This document shows positions 53,089 through 58,505 of a stretch of DNA of 64,000 bases, piece by piece. The notes below the pieces were generated by a model. That model saw only the letters and a program-made list of their open reading frames with translations, was not told the origin of the DNA and searched no databases. Where the stretch lies: sequence record NC_048674.1; one strand, 5' to 3'. Every line of letters starts with the position of its first letter. The stretch's first letter is position 1. The position numbers and the translations under genes were made by a program.

Positions 53089-53415
53089 ATGGCTAACCTA
53101 AATGATATCGCTCACTCAGTAAGACCTACAATCTCAATTGGAGACAAATCCACCGTGTGGTTTATCCGTGAAAAGCTTGTAGGGTGGTTTGAAGAAAGTG
53201 TAGAATACTGGCTTGAATGGTGTAAAGAAGATGGTATAGAACCTATCGAAGAGGTTCTAAAAGAAAATATGAAGCTTCTCAACGCAATAAAAACATGTTC
53301 TACAATCACAAAGAAAACTGTTGATTGGAAACTGGTTATGGGTTATGATGTTGACATTGATAAGCTTGCACTCGACTGGTTAGATCTATATCTTGACTAT
53401 GAGGTTAAAAAATGA
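53089..53415 (+). CDS. hypothetical early protein
   Basis: TGnTATAAT upstream, SD GAGG. Confidence 0.65.
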   Translation: MANLNDIAHSVRPTISIGDKSTVWFIREKLVGWFEESVEYWLEWCKEDGIEPIEEVLKENMKLLNAIKTCSTITKKTVDWKLVMGYDVDIDKLALDWLDLYLDYEVKK

Positions 53416-53684
53416 GTATGTACAAATTCCGAAGTGACTATGAAAAAGAAGAGTTCATTTCTGTTGGTGAGGTTTTTCACGAATTTGAAGAGGATGGTAT
53501 TAACTCAAACAAGTTAATCGTTGATTTTCTTAAAAAGACTGGTCGTGACGAATTTGAACTTGTGCCGTTTGTACCTGATGAAAAATACGTTATCGATTTA
53601 GAAGAAACTCCCGATGAACTGAAAGACTTGATCTATCATTTCAGCCAAGCTGACATCGAAAACTATCTTGTGGAGATTGAATAA
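53412..53684 (+). CDS. hypothetical acidic protein (paralog of 53684 and 7996)
   Basis: YKFRS..EEF..HFSQADIENYLVEI. Confidence 0.7.
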   Translation: MSMYKFRSDYEKEEFISVGEVFHEFEEDGINSNKLIVDFLKKTGRDEFELVPFVPDEKYVIDLEETPDELKDLIYHFSQADIENYLVEIE

Positions 53685-53971
53685 TGAACAAATACCGGTT
53701 TAAAAGTGAGAACCATAAACAGGAATTTCTGAATTCTTCGTGGGATTTTGAAGATGAGATGGAATTCAACTACAACGAATCCATCTGTAAATTCTTGGAT
53801 ATGGAAGGTATTGACGAATTTTATGTTGACGAAACAGAAGACCATCAGTATTGTATCCTAATCGAAGACGACGACGGGAATTTTGGAATCGCAGAAGTCA
53901 TCCATATCGGTAAACCGCTTCTGTTCCACTTCTACCCAGAAGACGTACATCATTATCTCGAAGTAGTTTAA
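53684..53971 (+). CDS. hypothetical acidic protein
   Basis: YRFKS..QEF..HFYPEDVHHYLEV. Confidence 0.7.
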   Translation: MNKYRFKSENHKQEFLNSSWDFEDEMEFNYNESICKFLDMEGIDEFYVDETEDHQYCILIEDDDGNFGIAEVIHIGKPLLFHFYPEDVHHYLEVV

Positions 53972-53993: not shown

Positions 53994-56228
53994 ATGAAAA
54001 TTGTTACAAATAAACAACCTGTATTTGGGACTGTTATGGAAGAGTCCCGCGATTTTGGTATGAAGTTTGATGAAAAAGCTTATACCATTCTTAGTTCTGG
54101 GCTTTATAAATTCAAGATCCGAGCTTTCATTCGTGAATTGAGCTGTAACGCAATCGATGGTCACATTGCATTGGAAAAGATTGGTGGAACCCCACCGAAA
54201 TATTTTGATGTAGAGCTTCCGTCTGATATTAATTTGCAATGGAGACTCCGCGATTATGGTATTGGTATGGACAAGGATGGTATTTTCAACTTGTTCACCA
54301 CATATTTTGCATCAACCAAGGAAGATTCTGACGATTTTATCGGTGCATTTGGTCTTGGTTCTAAAAGTCCGTTCTGCTACACAACAACATTCACTGTAAC
54401 ATCGTGGTGTAAGGGTCTCAAAACCGTCTATAGCATCTTCATGAACAACGGTATACCAAAGTGTGTCCCCATCTTCGAAGAACCGTCAGACGAGCCCACA
54501 GGTATCGAAATCGTAATCCCTATCGATCAAGATGATATTACCGAAGTTCGGAATGAAGCTCGGGTGGTGTACCACACATTTGATAAAGATGGATTTTATC
54601 CAAACATCATCAATCAGAATTTCGAGTTGACTAACTACAAGTCATCTGGTTACTATGGTTCCATCATGGATAATGGCGTATATGCTGTTATGGGTGGTGT
54701 TTCTTACAAGATCCCAGCAAAGCTTTACGAAAATGAGGTTTGTTCGGTATTCTTTAATAATTCATATAACTTTATCGATTTTCCTGTTGGGTCTCTCAAT
54801 CCTCTCCCGAACCGGGAAGAATTGAGTCTTGATAAACACACACTGAATACACTGAATTCTTATTTTAAATCCCAATCGGACCAAGTTATTGATGAAGTCA
54901 ATAAAAAGGTTTCTGAACATGGAAAGGATGCACGAAGTAAAATTCATGCTATTTTGTCTATGGATTTTGGTGAGCATATCTTTAACAAAGTATCAAAGAT
55001 TATTGACCATAACGGCAAGTCTCTTCAAGATTGGCGCTTCTTCTACGAAAGTATTACATCTTCGAAAGAATGGTCTTTGTTTAAAGATTTCTGTGTGGAT
55101 CACAGTTATAAAAACAAAAATTTCGTTTATATCGATACATTTAGTAATGCGGTGCGAAATGTTTGGAATCTTGAACGTGCAAGATATTACGGGTCGTCTC
55201 GTAAAATCGAGTTTAATGACTATTTCATGCCGTCAGTAAAGAATAAGCGATATCCATTCCCAATCCTTCTGTCTAATATGGATGGTAAGTGGAAGGTACG
55301 GATCAAGCTTCTTATGAAGTATGGTATCATTCCTAATGAACGGGTTGTTGTTATGAGCGATTACCCTTATTCTCGCAAACCTTTCAAGAATGTAACTCGA
55401 AATCTCTTTATCCAGATTGCAAAGCGTTACCACAAAGACGATATCGATGTTTTTCATGTAGAGAAGTTGTATGATAAGCACGTTCAAGAAATTGAAGAGA
55501 AAGAAGCAGAAGAGAAGCGCCAACGTCGTTTAGAAGCACAGCGGAATAGGGCTAAAACTCCACGTTACAAACCAGACAACTCGCATTATTATAATAAAGG
55601 GTATCGCAGTACTGGCAATTTCCTTGCCAAGGATGTACACGAGCTTAGTGGGCTGTATGGTCTTCGTTCTGGCGAATATATTGTTGTTGATGGTCATGAA
55701 GTTACAGATGGACTTCAAAGTTGGTTATCTGAGATGTTTGATACAACGTTGTATGCATTTCCGAAAACCCTTGAACGACGGGCTAACATGAATGAGAATT
55801 TGACTCTCATTACAAAGGAAATGATCAAAGGTAAACTTGTTGAATATCTCAATAACAATTTAAAGGGTAATAAAATTGGTTGGAATATCAATAGGTCTGA
55901 TAAGCCAAGGGTCGATATGGAAATTACTCGGGAAATGAAGGACTATTTTGGTATCTCGGAATCCGGTGATTGGGATCATGATCTTGGTAATATTTATGTT
56001 CATGCTCAAGAATATTTGACTGAACATGAATATCAAGTTTATACCGATGTTGTTGAAAACCATCGTCAGAGTATGTATGATGTATATCATAATTTTTATG
56101 ACGAAATGAAAAAGCAATTCCCCATGGAATGTGCGATTCTTAGGTTGAAGAAAAATTATAGTTGTGTAAAAAACGAAGAGTTCGAACTTGCAACTAAACT
56201 TATTATGGAAAACTACAAAGGGGTGTAA
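53994..56228 (+). CDS. rIIA: RIIA protein
   Basis: LSSGLYKFKIRAFIRELSCNAIDGH, LRDYGIGM, YFASTK, GAFGLGSKSPF, REELSLD. Confidence 0.96.
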   Translation: MKIVTNKQPVFGTVMEESRDFGMKFDEKAYTILSSGLYKFKIRAFIRELSCNAIDGHIALEKIGGTPPKYFDVELPSDINLQWRLRDYGIGMDKDGIFNLFTTYFASTKEDSDDFIGAFGLGSKSPFCYTTTFTVTSWCKGLKTVYSIFMNNGIPKCVPIFEEPSDEPTGIEIVIPIDQDDITEVRNEARVVYHTFDKDGFYPNIINQNFELTNYKSSGYYGSIMDNGVYAVMGGVSYKIPAKLYENEVCSVFFNNSYNFIDFPVGSLNPLPNREELSLDKHTLNTLNSYFKSQSDQVIDEVNKKVSEHGKDARSKIHAILSMDFGEHIFNKVSKIIDHNGKSLQDWRFFYESITSSKEWSLFKDFCVDHSYKNKNFVYIDTFSNAVRNVWNLERARYYGSSRKIEFNDYFMPSVKNKRYPFPILLSNMDGKWKVRIKLLMKYGIIPNERVVVMSDYPYSRKPFKNVTRNLFIQIAKRYHKDDIDVFHVEKLYDKHVQEIEEKEAEEKRQRRLEAQRNRAKTPRYKPDNSHYYNKGYRSTGNFLAKDVHELSGLYGLRSGEYIVVDGHEVTDGLQSWLSEMFDTTLYAFPKTLERRANMNENLTLITKEMIKGKLVEYLNNNLKGNKIGWNINRSDKPRVDMEITREMKDYFGISESGDWDHDLGNIYVHAQEYLTEHEYQVYTDVVENHRQSMYDVYHNFYDEMKKQFPMECAILRLKKNYSCVKNEEFELATKLIMENYKGV

Positions 56229-56252
56229 GCCCCTTTTTAATGAGGAAATAAA

Positions 56253-57446
56253 ATGGAAACTATCCATATTGAAAAACTTGAAGCATTGATTCGTAGCGGT
56301 ATTTACGATGTAACCGGTTATAAAATAAAAGAACTTGACAACAACAGAACTTTTGCATATTACAACCTAGACGATCTCGATGTTGTAGAACTTGTTATGT
56401 ATATCGAGGAAGAACTTGATATAGATCTTGGCGATCTCGATGTACTTGAAGGATGGGAAGCCCTTACAATTAAAGAATTGATTAAATTGATGGTTGGGAC
56501 TAATAAAATCGATTTGCAATTTGATGTACATGATTATTCTGAAAATAAAGTCGAAGAAAGTCGTGATGATAAAATTATCCGACTTCATAATCTCGGAATC
56601 AGCCAAAACGAAATTTCCCGTCAAACTGGTATCCCTCGTTCAACAGTAGGTGATGTAGTTCGTCGCTATAAGGGAATTCAGAAGAAGTCGGATAAAACAA
56701 TCCATTTGAAGGAAATAATCGAACCGGTTCATACCCCCGTGGTATCTTGGAATGCAAGTTATGACTTTATTAACTGCTTCATTGATGGAACCCCATACGT
56801 TGCAGACCGAGCCCACCCACGGTTTGAAGATGCGTTTCAACTCCTGATCCGCGACAATGATGTGGTCGGTGCGGTAAACCTGATTTCTATCAAAGAAGCA
56901 ATCAAAACCTATTCTTCTGGTGATATTCGGATTGAAGGCGACACACTCTACTATCGTGATATTGTTCTTGATACATCGATGACCCGAAGAATCATTGATA
57001 TGTGGGCGTCCGGGGAAGAGTTTGAGTATATGGTTACCTTCCTGAAAAACCTGTTACAGAATCCGCGCCGTGCGGCTGTATACGAGCTTTTTGACTTCCT
57101 GACTCATAGTGACATCAAAATCACCAACGATGGTCATTTCCTAGCGTACAAGCGCGTTACCGAGGATTATAAGGATATCCGCACCCACACGTTTGATAAT
57201 AGTATTGGTTCTAAGCCACGAGTCGAGCCATTTGAGGTAGATGACGACCGAAACAATACTTGTGCTGCGGGTCTTCATGCTGCTGCTCGTCACTACATCC
57301 CATACTATTCATCTTGTGAGAATGACCGGGTTGTGATGGTTAAGATCAACCCAGCCCACGTCGTTGCTATCCCAACTGATTACGACAATGCGAAACTTCG
57401 TACTTGGACTTATGAAGTAATCTCAGACGTAACTCACGAGTTCTAA
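56253..57446 (+). CDS. rIIB: RIIB protein with N-terminal ACP-like and HTH domains
   Basis: WNAS..F, FLKNLLQNP, DGHFLAYKRV, CAAGLH, DYDNAKLRTW.YEVI. First ~82 aa resemble acyl carrier protein. Confidence 0.95.
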   Translation: METIHIEKLEALIRSGIYDVTGYKIKELDNNRTFAYYNLDDLDVVELVMYIEEELDIDLGDLDVLEGWEALTIKELIKLMVGTNKIDLQFDVHDYSENKVEESRDDKIIRLHNLGISQNEISRQTGIPRSTVGDVVRRYKGIQKKSDKTIHLKEIIEPVHTPVVSWNASYDFINCFIDGTPYVADRAHPRFEDAFQLLIRDNDVVGAVNLISIKEAIKTYSSGDIRIEGDTLYYRDIVLDTSMTRRIIDMWASGEEFEYMVTFLKNLLQNPRRAAVYELFDFLTHSDIKITNDGHFLAYKRVTEDYKDIRTHTFDNSIGSKPRVEPFEVDDDRNNTCAAGLHAAARHYIPYYSSCENDRVVMVKINPAHVVAIPTDYDNAKLRTWTYEVISDVTHEF

Positions 57447-57551
57447 ATAAGGGGAGAAATCCCCTTTTAACATATGAGAAAATCAAAATCAAAACATGAG
57501 TACATTGTGATATATAATGTTTATAACAAAACACATAAGGTACTTTAAATA

Positions 57552-58505
57552 ATGGCTATCAGTAATTACGAAACTGTCATCTCACAGATTGTCGAGATGA
57601 AAGAGAACAAGGGTATGGGTTCGCGAGCAATTGCGAAAGAACTTGGTATTTCTAAATCTTCCGTAAACTATTATTACGAGCGTTTCATGGAAGAGAACAA
57701 TATTGTGGACGATATCAAAACCGGTCCCCGTGTTCTAGTTCTGGATATTGAAACCGCTCCGATTATGGCTCATGTATGGCGCTTGTTTAAGACCAACGTT
57801 GGTCTGAATATGATCGAGTCCGATTGGTATATGCTTAGTTTTGCTGCTAAATGGTTTGACAGTGATGAAATCATTTATATGGACCAGCGAAATGCACCAA
57901 ATATCGAAGATGATTCAGAAATGCTGAAAGTTCTATGGGAGCTTCTTGACGAAGCTGATATCGTTCTTCATCAGAATGGTCGTCGGTTTGATATTCCAAA
58001 AATTCGCAGTCGTATGATCGTTCATGGTATGAAACCGTTCTCTACCGTGAAGCATATTGATACTCTTGAGATCGCAAAACGCACGTTTGGTTTTACTTCC
58101 AACAAGCTGGAATATATGACCGATAAGCTATGCACAGAAACCAAGAAATCTAAACATACTCAATTCCCCGGTTTTGAATTGTGGAAAGAATGCTTGGCTG
58201 GTAATATCGAAGCTTGGAAAGAGATGGAAGAATATAATATTGATGATATCGTATCTCTCCAAGAACTATATGTTAAATTGGCTCCATGGTCGGATCGTCT
58301 TCCGAACTTCTCTCTTTATACAGATTCAGACAAATTCACTTGCGTATGTGGAAATCATGAGTTTGAAGATGCCGGGTTCGCGTATACCGAAGTTAGTAAG
58401 TTCAAACAATATAAATGCACCCACTGTGGTAAACACTGGCGTGGTCGCAAGAACCAAATCACTAAGATTAAGTCAAAACTTCTGTTGACTAATGCTCGTG
58501 AATAA
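57552..58505 (+). CDS. HTH + DEDD-type 3'-5' exonuclease (RNase H fold) + Zn ribbon
   Basis: SRAIAKELGISKSSV, LDIET, NGRRFD, YNIDD, CVCG..CTHCG. Confidence 0.82.
   Translation: MAISNYETVISQIVEMKENKGMGSRAIAKELGISKSSVNYYYERFMEENNIVDDIKTGPRVLVLDIETAPIMAHVWRLFKTNVGLNMIESDWYMLSFAAKWFDSDEIIYMDQRNAPNIEDDSEMLKVLWELLDEADIVLHQNGRRFDIPKIRSRMIVHGMKPFSTVKHIDTLEIAKRTFGFTSNKLEYMTDKLCTETKKSKHTQFPGFELWKECLAGNIEAWKEMEEYNIDDIVSLQELYVKLAPWSDRLPNFSLYTDSDKFTCVCGNHEFEDAGFAYTEVSKFKQYKCTHCGKHWRGRKNQITKIKSKLLLTNARE

Follow-up and report, generated by a model that had tools for sequence, protein, structure and literature searches.

The rIIA and rIIB genes are among the most famous in genetics, and the biochemical mechanism of their products is still a 70-year-old problem. 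The rIIB gene of the window analysed here, a stretch of 64,000 nucleotides from sequence record NC_048674.1, raises a question that may bear on it: what is a domain resembling an acyl carrier protein (ACP), with an aspartate where ACPs bear their prosthetic arm, doing at the N-terminus of RIIB? The source phage of the window is T4-like (Straboviridae, Emmerichvirinae, Ceceduovirus) and 100% identical to Aeromonas phage AS-zj over this region and in the encoded RIIB. An earlier reading of the DNA letters (here termed the original prediction) had placed an ACP-like domain in frame with the helix-turn-helix (HTH) region and the core of RIIB, and had proposed a profile search, a structure prediction and a survey of rIIB homologs as checks.

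An acyl carrier protein fold at the N-terminus of RIIB

The gene and the parts of its product, with residues numbered in amino acids (aa), are as follows.

56253..57446, plus strand: rIIB open reading frame (ORF), 397 aa plus stop, in the order ACP-like module, HTH domain, RIIB core (ORF list, Pfam and PHROG profiles)
56253..56507, plus strand: ACP-fold module, aa 1-85, net charge -12, isoelectric point (pI) 4.2 (PF00550, PDB profile matches, AlphaFold2 (AF2) modelling, Foldseek, true-ACP profile)
56373..56417, plus strand: helix II, aa 41-55, DLDVVELVMYIEEEL, corresponding to the recognition helix of ACPs; conservation of the module is highest here (DSSP on the model)
56373..56375, plus strand: codon GAT, Asp41, at the place of the phosphopantetheine-bearing Ser36 of AcpP (hmmalign column shared with the serine of E. 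coli AcpP)
56508..56561, plus strand: acidic flexible linker, aa 86-103, net charge -5 (predicted local distance difference test (pLDDT) below 50 at residues 89-100 of the full-length model)
56562..56678, plus strand: HTH domain, aa 104-142, common to T4-type RIIB (HTH_SB and HTH_23 matches at 106-142; model helices 104-113, 118-125 and 129-139)
56742..57443, plus strand: RIIB core domain, aa 164-397 (phrog_609 and other RIIB PHROGs; PF26926 on homologs; AF2 model)

Membership of the RIIB family is indicated by the core, which matched phrog_609 with E = 4.4e-106 and four further RIIB PHROGs, and by the position of the gene directly 3' of rIIA in a T4-like genome; PF26926 (Phage_T4_rIIB) is precomputed on all close homologs of the protein. 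The ORF contains no internal stops, and its N-terminal sequence is as the original prediction had quoted it.

Comparison of this N-terminal part with carrier proteins bore out the proposed kinship. The gathering score of PF00550 (PP-binding) is 20.8, and residues 14-78 exceeded it, with 27.9 bits when the module was searched by itself and 24.1 bits in the context of the full protein. RIIBs carrying the same fusion in phages ZPAH1 and CC2 and in the metagenomic protein P0002 likewise exceeded this score (29.5, 21.6 and 24.3 bits, respectively), while those of phage 65, AS-szw and the metagenomic P0008 and P0010 fell under it. By BLASTP, the module of the window was 39% identical to E. coli AcpP over 54 aa, and that of ZPAH1 46% identical (the AcpP sequence used here, in the site alignment, in the charge comparison and for the true-ACP profile agrees with the PDB chains of AcpP that were aligned). 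A profile built from the modules of three phage lineages returned 95 chains from the PDB, all those listed being ACPs and E. coli AcpP the best of them (E = 1.7e-8), and a profile of this kind, when run exhaustively against 1.84 billion representatives, retrieved 1,882 proteins that were nearly all ACP-sized or tandem-ACP. In the reverse direction, a profile made only from serine-bearing ACPs (n = 74) recognised the RIIB of the window with 60 bits, five of the six other fused proteins with 42-58 bits and P0008 with 22 bits, and gave no matches to non-fused RIIBs.

Structure prediction led to the same assignment. From a shallow alignment of seven sequences, AF2 modelled the module with a pLDDT of 90.6 and a predicted template modelling score (pTM) of 0.83, with helices at residues 6-21, 41-55, 68-70 and 73-82, i.e. 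the four-helix carrier fold with its long helix II. The top 50 Foldseek matches of this model in the PDB were all carrier proteins or carrier domains, mostly ACPs (probability ~1.0, template modelling (TM) score 0.5-0.7), and in the viral library BFVD the best match was the RIIB of phage 65.2, followed by phage carrier proteins. The module does not qualify as an AcpP equivalog, scoring 28.8 bits with TIGR00517 (cut-off 70.45) and 26.4 bits with NF002149 (cut-off 106). Residues 1-85 of RIIB are thus, by four independent routes, a genuine ACP fold, which is best explained as derived from a proteobacterial AcpP-type gene.

In the full-length AF2 model (pLDDT 84, pTM 0.51), three confident modules are joined by linkers whose pLDDT stays under 50 (residues 89-100 and 147-158), and the ACP-fold module is therefore predicted to be tethered to the rest of the protein and not packed on it; the model docks this module on neither the HTH domain nor the core. 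The RIIB core, although confidently modelled, had no Foldseek neighbour in the PDB.

Carrier site and evolutionary history of the module

As the original prediction had stated, the residue aligned with the phosphopantetheine-bearing serine of AcpP is an aspartate, whose GAT codon lies two substitutions from any serine codon, and the conserved serine (DSL) of PF00550 is accordingly missing from the module of the window. Because this serine is replaced, the module can hold neither phosphopantetheine nor an acyl chain and is unable to act as a carrier; phosphopantetheinylation would be chemically excluded at Asp41, while for P0002 it is conceivable. Among the fused RIIBs the residue and its codon are distributed as follows.

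Window, CC2 and AS-szw: Asp, GAT
P0002: Ser, AGT
Phage 65 group: Gly, GGA
ZPAH1 and P0010/P0011: Glu, GAA
P0008: Glu, GAG

Serine thus occurs at the carrier site only in P0002 among the fused RIIB lineages. P0002, which is the sister of the window's lineage in the tree of the core domain (99/100 support), retains an intact D-S-L together with D35, E41, E47 and E48, the residues through which AcpS recognises ACP (10.1101/2025.01.28.635281). Either three or more losses of the serine or a single regain would account for this pattern, and the deeper node of the tree, a polytomy, is compatible with both; either way, the function of the module in most lineages needs no serine. The survey of homologs that had been proposed gave a divided answer: the fusion itself was recovered in 21 phage records, but the aspartate was not conserved, since it is replaced by serine in P0002, by glycine in the phage 65 group and by glutamate in ZPAH1, P0008 and P0010/P0011. 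With S, G, D and E all found at the site, the idea that Asp41 imitates a phosphoserine must be abandoned as a general feature of the module. Serine, aspartate and glycine are the usual N-cap residues of helices, and helix II starts exactly at residue 41 in the AF2 model, so that the residues tolerated at this site can be explained on structural grounds. The site leans towards acidic residues, with D/E in five of the seven fused lineages. Additionally, D/E occupied it in 34 of the 35 non-serine domains among 173 domains aligned from the top library matches, a share that is inflated because the query profile rewards D/E at this position.

The module is under purifying selection, somewhat relaxed relative to the core, as the ratio of non-synonymous to synonymous substitution rates (dN/dS) among AS-zj, CC2 and AS-szw lies at 0.14-0.25 for the module and at ~0.09 for the core. 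No frameshifts, stops or deletions were found in the module across seven lineages; although the modules of different lineages share just 20-46% identity, they keep the fold, and their net charge ranges from -10 to -15 throughout (AcpP, -15). The invariant columns of the module (L42, D43, E46, L47 and E52) all fall within helix II, and the four AcpS-recognition residues are kept as D40, E46, E52 and E53. Helix II is the universal docking helix of ACPs, which is laid onto basic patches of their partners. Synonymous divergence between AS-zj and AS-szw was 0.25 in the module (window 56253-56560 against L006 501-810) and 0.018 in the RIIB core, from which the 5' end of the AS-szw rIIB gene is taken to be a recombinant patch from a more distant relative.

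The fused module was present in 21 of 2,827 phage records with a RIIB match (~0.7%), namely 15 Ceceduovirus records, phage 65 (two records), 65.2, avDM6, ZPAH1 and Aswh_1; all of these phages infect Aeromonas and all belong to the Emmerichvirinae. Metagenomic members (P0002, P0005, P0008 and P0010/P0011) were obtained from a collection of 5.8 billion proteins, while scans of the JGI metagenomes, which returned only unrelated HTH proteins, and of IMG/VR, which returned nothing beyond the known phages, revealed no further fusions. T4-type RIIBs align only from about aa 96-117 onwards, i.e. from the HTH domain, in keeping with the earlier statement that T4 RIIB has no such module. The original prediction had also named misassembly, or a separate ORF at the N-terminus, as an outcome that would overturn it; this was rejected, as the reading frame is continuous across 15 near-identical records, three more divergent phage lineages and several metagenomic contigs. 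The lone apparently short form, P0007, is cut by the end of its contig, and its ACP frame continues upstream. Furthermore, the synteny around fused rIIB genes is always the same (topoisomerase large subunit, small ORFs, rIIA, rIIB, exonuclease).

In a maximum-likelihood tree of the core domain alone, all fused RIIBs grouped with P0009 in one clade (100/99 support), indicating a single acquisition of the module; the sequences thus point to one fusion event, in a phage ancestral to the Emmerichvirinae and their metagenomic relatives, which make up a small clade of T4-like phages of Aeromonas. P0009 itself (551 aa, from a Logan contig) has an N-terminal region of ~240 aa with no Pfam match. The possibility that this region is a diverged ACP was pursued, but the ACP search was not significant, and the region represents either a replacement of the module or its extreme divergence. 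The domain order is not fixed within the clade, being HTH, ACP and core in P0010/P0011 as opposed to ACP, HTH and core in the window, so that the module must have been shuffled as a unit; the P0010 RIIB (L014:6001-7146) and P0011, unlike the RIIB of the window, have no HTH between module and core. RIIBs of two other Aeromonas phages, phage 31 (L004 27-1160, 377 aa) and phiAS5 (L005 1141-2439, 432 aa), carry extra N-terminal HTH-like repeats and no ACP module. Since domains are added at this end there as well, the N-terminus of RIIB is a hot spot of domain accretion.

Possible function of the module

If the domain is an ACP fold that cannot carry, it may still bind what ACPs bind. We favour the view, at a probability of roughly 0.55, that the module is a non-carrier, flexibly tethered protein-binding handle, the identity of the domain itself being held far more firmly. 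The acidic helix II would dock on a basic patch of a partner with an ACP-binding surface, and the module would thereby attach RIIB, and via RIIB also RIIA, to that partner, which might belong to the ACP clients of the host or to those phage proteins, RIIA for instance, that would otherwise use free ACP. What selection has preserved is threefold: the carrier fold, a strongly negative charge and the acidic helix II. Docking through helix II, like the identity of the partner, is something we infer. An ACP without its arm can engage a real client, since apo-AcpP stimulates MukB to the same degree as holo-AcpP does (PMC8602292), and the claim that some ACP clients need no prosthetic arm holds for this protein. 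A recognisable interaction domain fused to RIIB would offer a rare concrete handle on the RII system, as it names a candidate class of partners, the proteins with ACP-docking surfaces.

Several points weigh against this interpretation. AF2 did not dock the module against the HTH domain or the core. The conservation of helix II alone is no proof of docking, because the fold is built around this helix, and in any ACP no part is conserved better. Host AcpP, whose concentration is ~100 µM and which outnumbers MukB more than 100-fold (PMC8602292), would compete for any generic ACP-binding site. Additionally, P0002 keeps the DSL and all AcpS determinants, and the ancestral fusion, and P0002 today, might be real carriers, in which case the original function was possibly chemical. 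A clade-specific domain of RIIA was considered as the partner, but the C-terminal half of RIIA is divergent everywhere, and the shared distribution of the two follows phylogeny.

Among the alternatives, the fusion may be read as a Rosetta stone: RIIA and RIIB would generally use host ACP as a structural subunit, and this clade would have hard-wired a copy that out-competes free AcpP in cis. A fusion that arose once and was stably inherited is consistent with such a history, as is the 46% identity of the ZPAH1 module to E. coli AcpP, and the structural neighbours of the module include complexes in which ACP is a subunit (MmpL5-AcpM, EmbC-AcpM, the Ycf2-FtsHi motor and complex I). Tethering in cis would also answer the objection raised by the abundance of AcpP. 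However, no evidence that T4 RII proteins bind AcpP was found in the literature, and the module was not seen to dock on the other domains of RIIB itself, and we regard this account as doubtful. Equally doubtful is the broader proposal that RIIA and RIIB act on or with the host ACP network at the membrane, with ACP as a structural subunit or an ACP-client complex as their seat. If the account were true, the fusion would reveal a link between RII and the ACP network, and the serine-bearing P0002 protein, judged by its carrier site, could even be a phosphopantetheinylated RIIB.

Slightly less credible still is the function originally proposed, an ACP decoy in which Asp41 mimics the charge of phosphoserine and which titrates or captures SpoT, MukB, lipid acyltransferases or a defence protein. 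The retention of the recognition helix and of the AcpS-contact residues would suit a decoy, as would the acceptance of apo-AcpP by MukB, and the preponderance of D/E at the carrier site (5/7 fused lineages, 34/35 non-serine domains) fits a preference for negative charge at the N-terminus of helix II. The latter share is, however, raised by the search profile, and a charge mimic cannot be required where the residue is glycine (phage 65 group) or serine (P0002). Moreover, a generic ACP client would already be occupied, given the great abundance of host AcpP, and at the concentrations quoted above it is implausible that a phage protein made early could titrate such clients stoichiometrically. As to defence proteins, no component in PADLOC resembles ACP or is known to need it, and PADLOC revealed no resemblance to defence systems for the module, RIIB or RIIA.

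The two remaining explanations rank lower than both the binding handle and the use of ACP as a structural subunit. The charge pattern of the protein (module -12, linker -5, HTH +6) and the fact that the module always adjoins the HTH region would allow module and linker to fold as an acidic lid on the basic HTH domain, acting as a nucleic-acid mimic that gates the binding of DNA or of a partner; this is unlikely, as AF2 predicted no contact (with low-confidence linkers and a pTM of 0.51), the order in P0010/P0011 is HTH, ACP, core, and a mere lid could do without a conserved fold as particular as that of ACPs. It is also improbable that the module once worked as a carrier, does so still in P0002-type phages and has decayed to a functionless remnant in the window, despite the intact serine of the sister lineage P0002, the somewhat faster evolution of the module relative to the core and the sub-threshold PF00550 scores of some lineages, since its dN/dS of 0.14-0.25 is well under 1, its frame is undamaged in all seven lineages, its fold is confidently predicted, and its charge and helix II persist although the lineages share only 20-46% identity.

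The rIIA-rIIB locus and relation to known systems

Two further features lie immediately upstream of the rIIB start.

53994..56228, plus strand: rIIA, 744 aa, upstream partner gene, directly preceding rIIB (ORF list; phrog_612 RIIA, E = 1.9e-162)
56242..56246, plus strand: Shine-Dalgarno sequence GAGGA, 6 nucleotides upstream of the rIIB ATG (read from the sequence)

At the level of BLAST, conservation of rIIA with the RIIAs of other phages is limited to the N-terminal ~350 aa, its C-terminal half being clade-specific. Just upstream of rIIA, two adjoining ORFs, 53412-53684 (90 aa) and 53684-53971 (95 aa), encode paralogs (32% identity, E = 5e-9), and small ORFs occur at the same place in all related contigs. 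Hairpins of the form GGGG-loop-CCCC with T runs directly follow the stops of rIIA (56217-56236) and rIIB (57452-57471); a terminator scanner flagged only that at 56217-56236, on the minus strand, and overall terminator-like counts were not above shuffle expectation. The gene 3' of rIIB (57552-58505) encodes a homolog of a DNA polymerase exonuclease subunit (phrog_403, RNase_H_2) with an N-terminal HTH of its own, to which the HTH of RIIB showed no similarity by BLASTP. A six-frame hmmsearch revealed no second ACP-like ORF in the window.

Full-text searches of the literature found no publication in which RIIB is connected with an ACP domain, nor one on the extension of the Aeromonas RIIBs, which is here regarded as an accessory pseudo-carrier domain; automatic Pfam annotation does flag PF00550 on the RIIB of ZPAH1. 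The closest known relatives of the remainder of the protein are the RIIBs of T4 and T6 (PF26926), with which it shares 38-42% identity in HTH and core and the same rIIA-rIIB gene order, but which start at the HTH and have no ACP module. The rII genes of these phages are needed on hosts with RexAB-type exclusion and their loss leads to rapid lysis, while RIIB counters lambda RexAB and triggers a CARD-gasdermin defence, the means of either being unexplained (10.1101/2023.05.28.542683).

The module itself most resembles the AcpP of bacterial type II fatty acid synthesis (E. coli/Vibrio; PF00550, TIGR00517), which gives the best sequence matches, has the same four-helix fold (TM 0.55-0.7 to AcpP structures) and has in common with it the helix II motif D-x-L-D-x-V-E-L-V-M-x-x-E-E-E and a pI of ~4. 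It differs from AcpP in lacking the carrier serine, in its divergent helices I, III and IV, with the TIGR00517 score of 28.8 bits against the 70.45 cut-off, and in being fused to an HTH domain and the RIIB core, whereas AcpP is a free protein of 78 aa. Free-standing phage ACPs (phrog_5934 and phrog_4154; phiCbK, pf16, Motura) were weak profile matches and structural matches in BFVD, but these are separate small proteins annotated as carriers, in contrast to a serine-less domain of RIIB. The use of ACP as a binding partner and not as a shuttle has precedents in its structural or regulatory role with MukB and IscS/ISD11, in mitochondria with LYR proteins and complex I, and as AcpM with MmpL5 and EmbC. 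In those systems a free, normally modified host ACP is recruited, whereas here a serine-less copy is covalently part of a phage protein.

The nearest parallel for the loss of the serine is provided by metagenomic ACP-like proteins with the motif D-[D/E]-L-D, which show the same carrier-site substitution and helix II as the module of the window but are free-standing, in some cases apparently exported, and have neither RIIB nor HTH. The longer motif D-[D/E]-L-D-V-V-E-L was found in free-standing members among the closest library matches, and helix II of P0091 (LDELDVVELIMYIE) is almost identical to that of the window's RIIB (LDDLDVVELVMYIE). P0091 (L016:8001-8300) is a free-standing ORF on a phage-like contig; P0108, P0111 and P0197 are likewise serine-less, free-standing or differently fused, and match phage ACP PHROGs, P0197 having two serine-less ACP-like repeats after a coiled-coil. 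None of these four had a match in curated phage genomes. Seven bacterial metagenomic proteins of 110-150 aa (P0078, P0081, P0087, P0090, P0099, P0110 and P0116; L017:8001-8423) have a signal-peptide or lipobox leader and behind it an ACP fold with Glu or Asp in place of the carrier serine, and, judged by these leaders, appear to form an exported family; P0110 is flanked by genes for a DegT-type aminotransferase and a GNAT acetyltransferase and lies 3' of nuo genes. As serine-less ACP-like proteins also exist in free-standing form, the ACP fold seems to serve non-carrier roles beyond the RIIB fusion, and the recurrence of D-[D/E]-L-D folds in both phage proteins and exported bacterial proteins points to a non-carrier use that has gone unrecognised.

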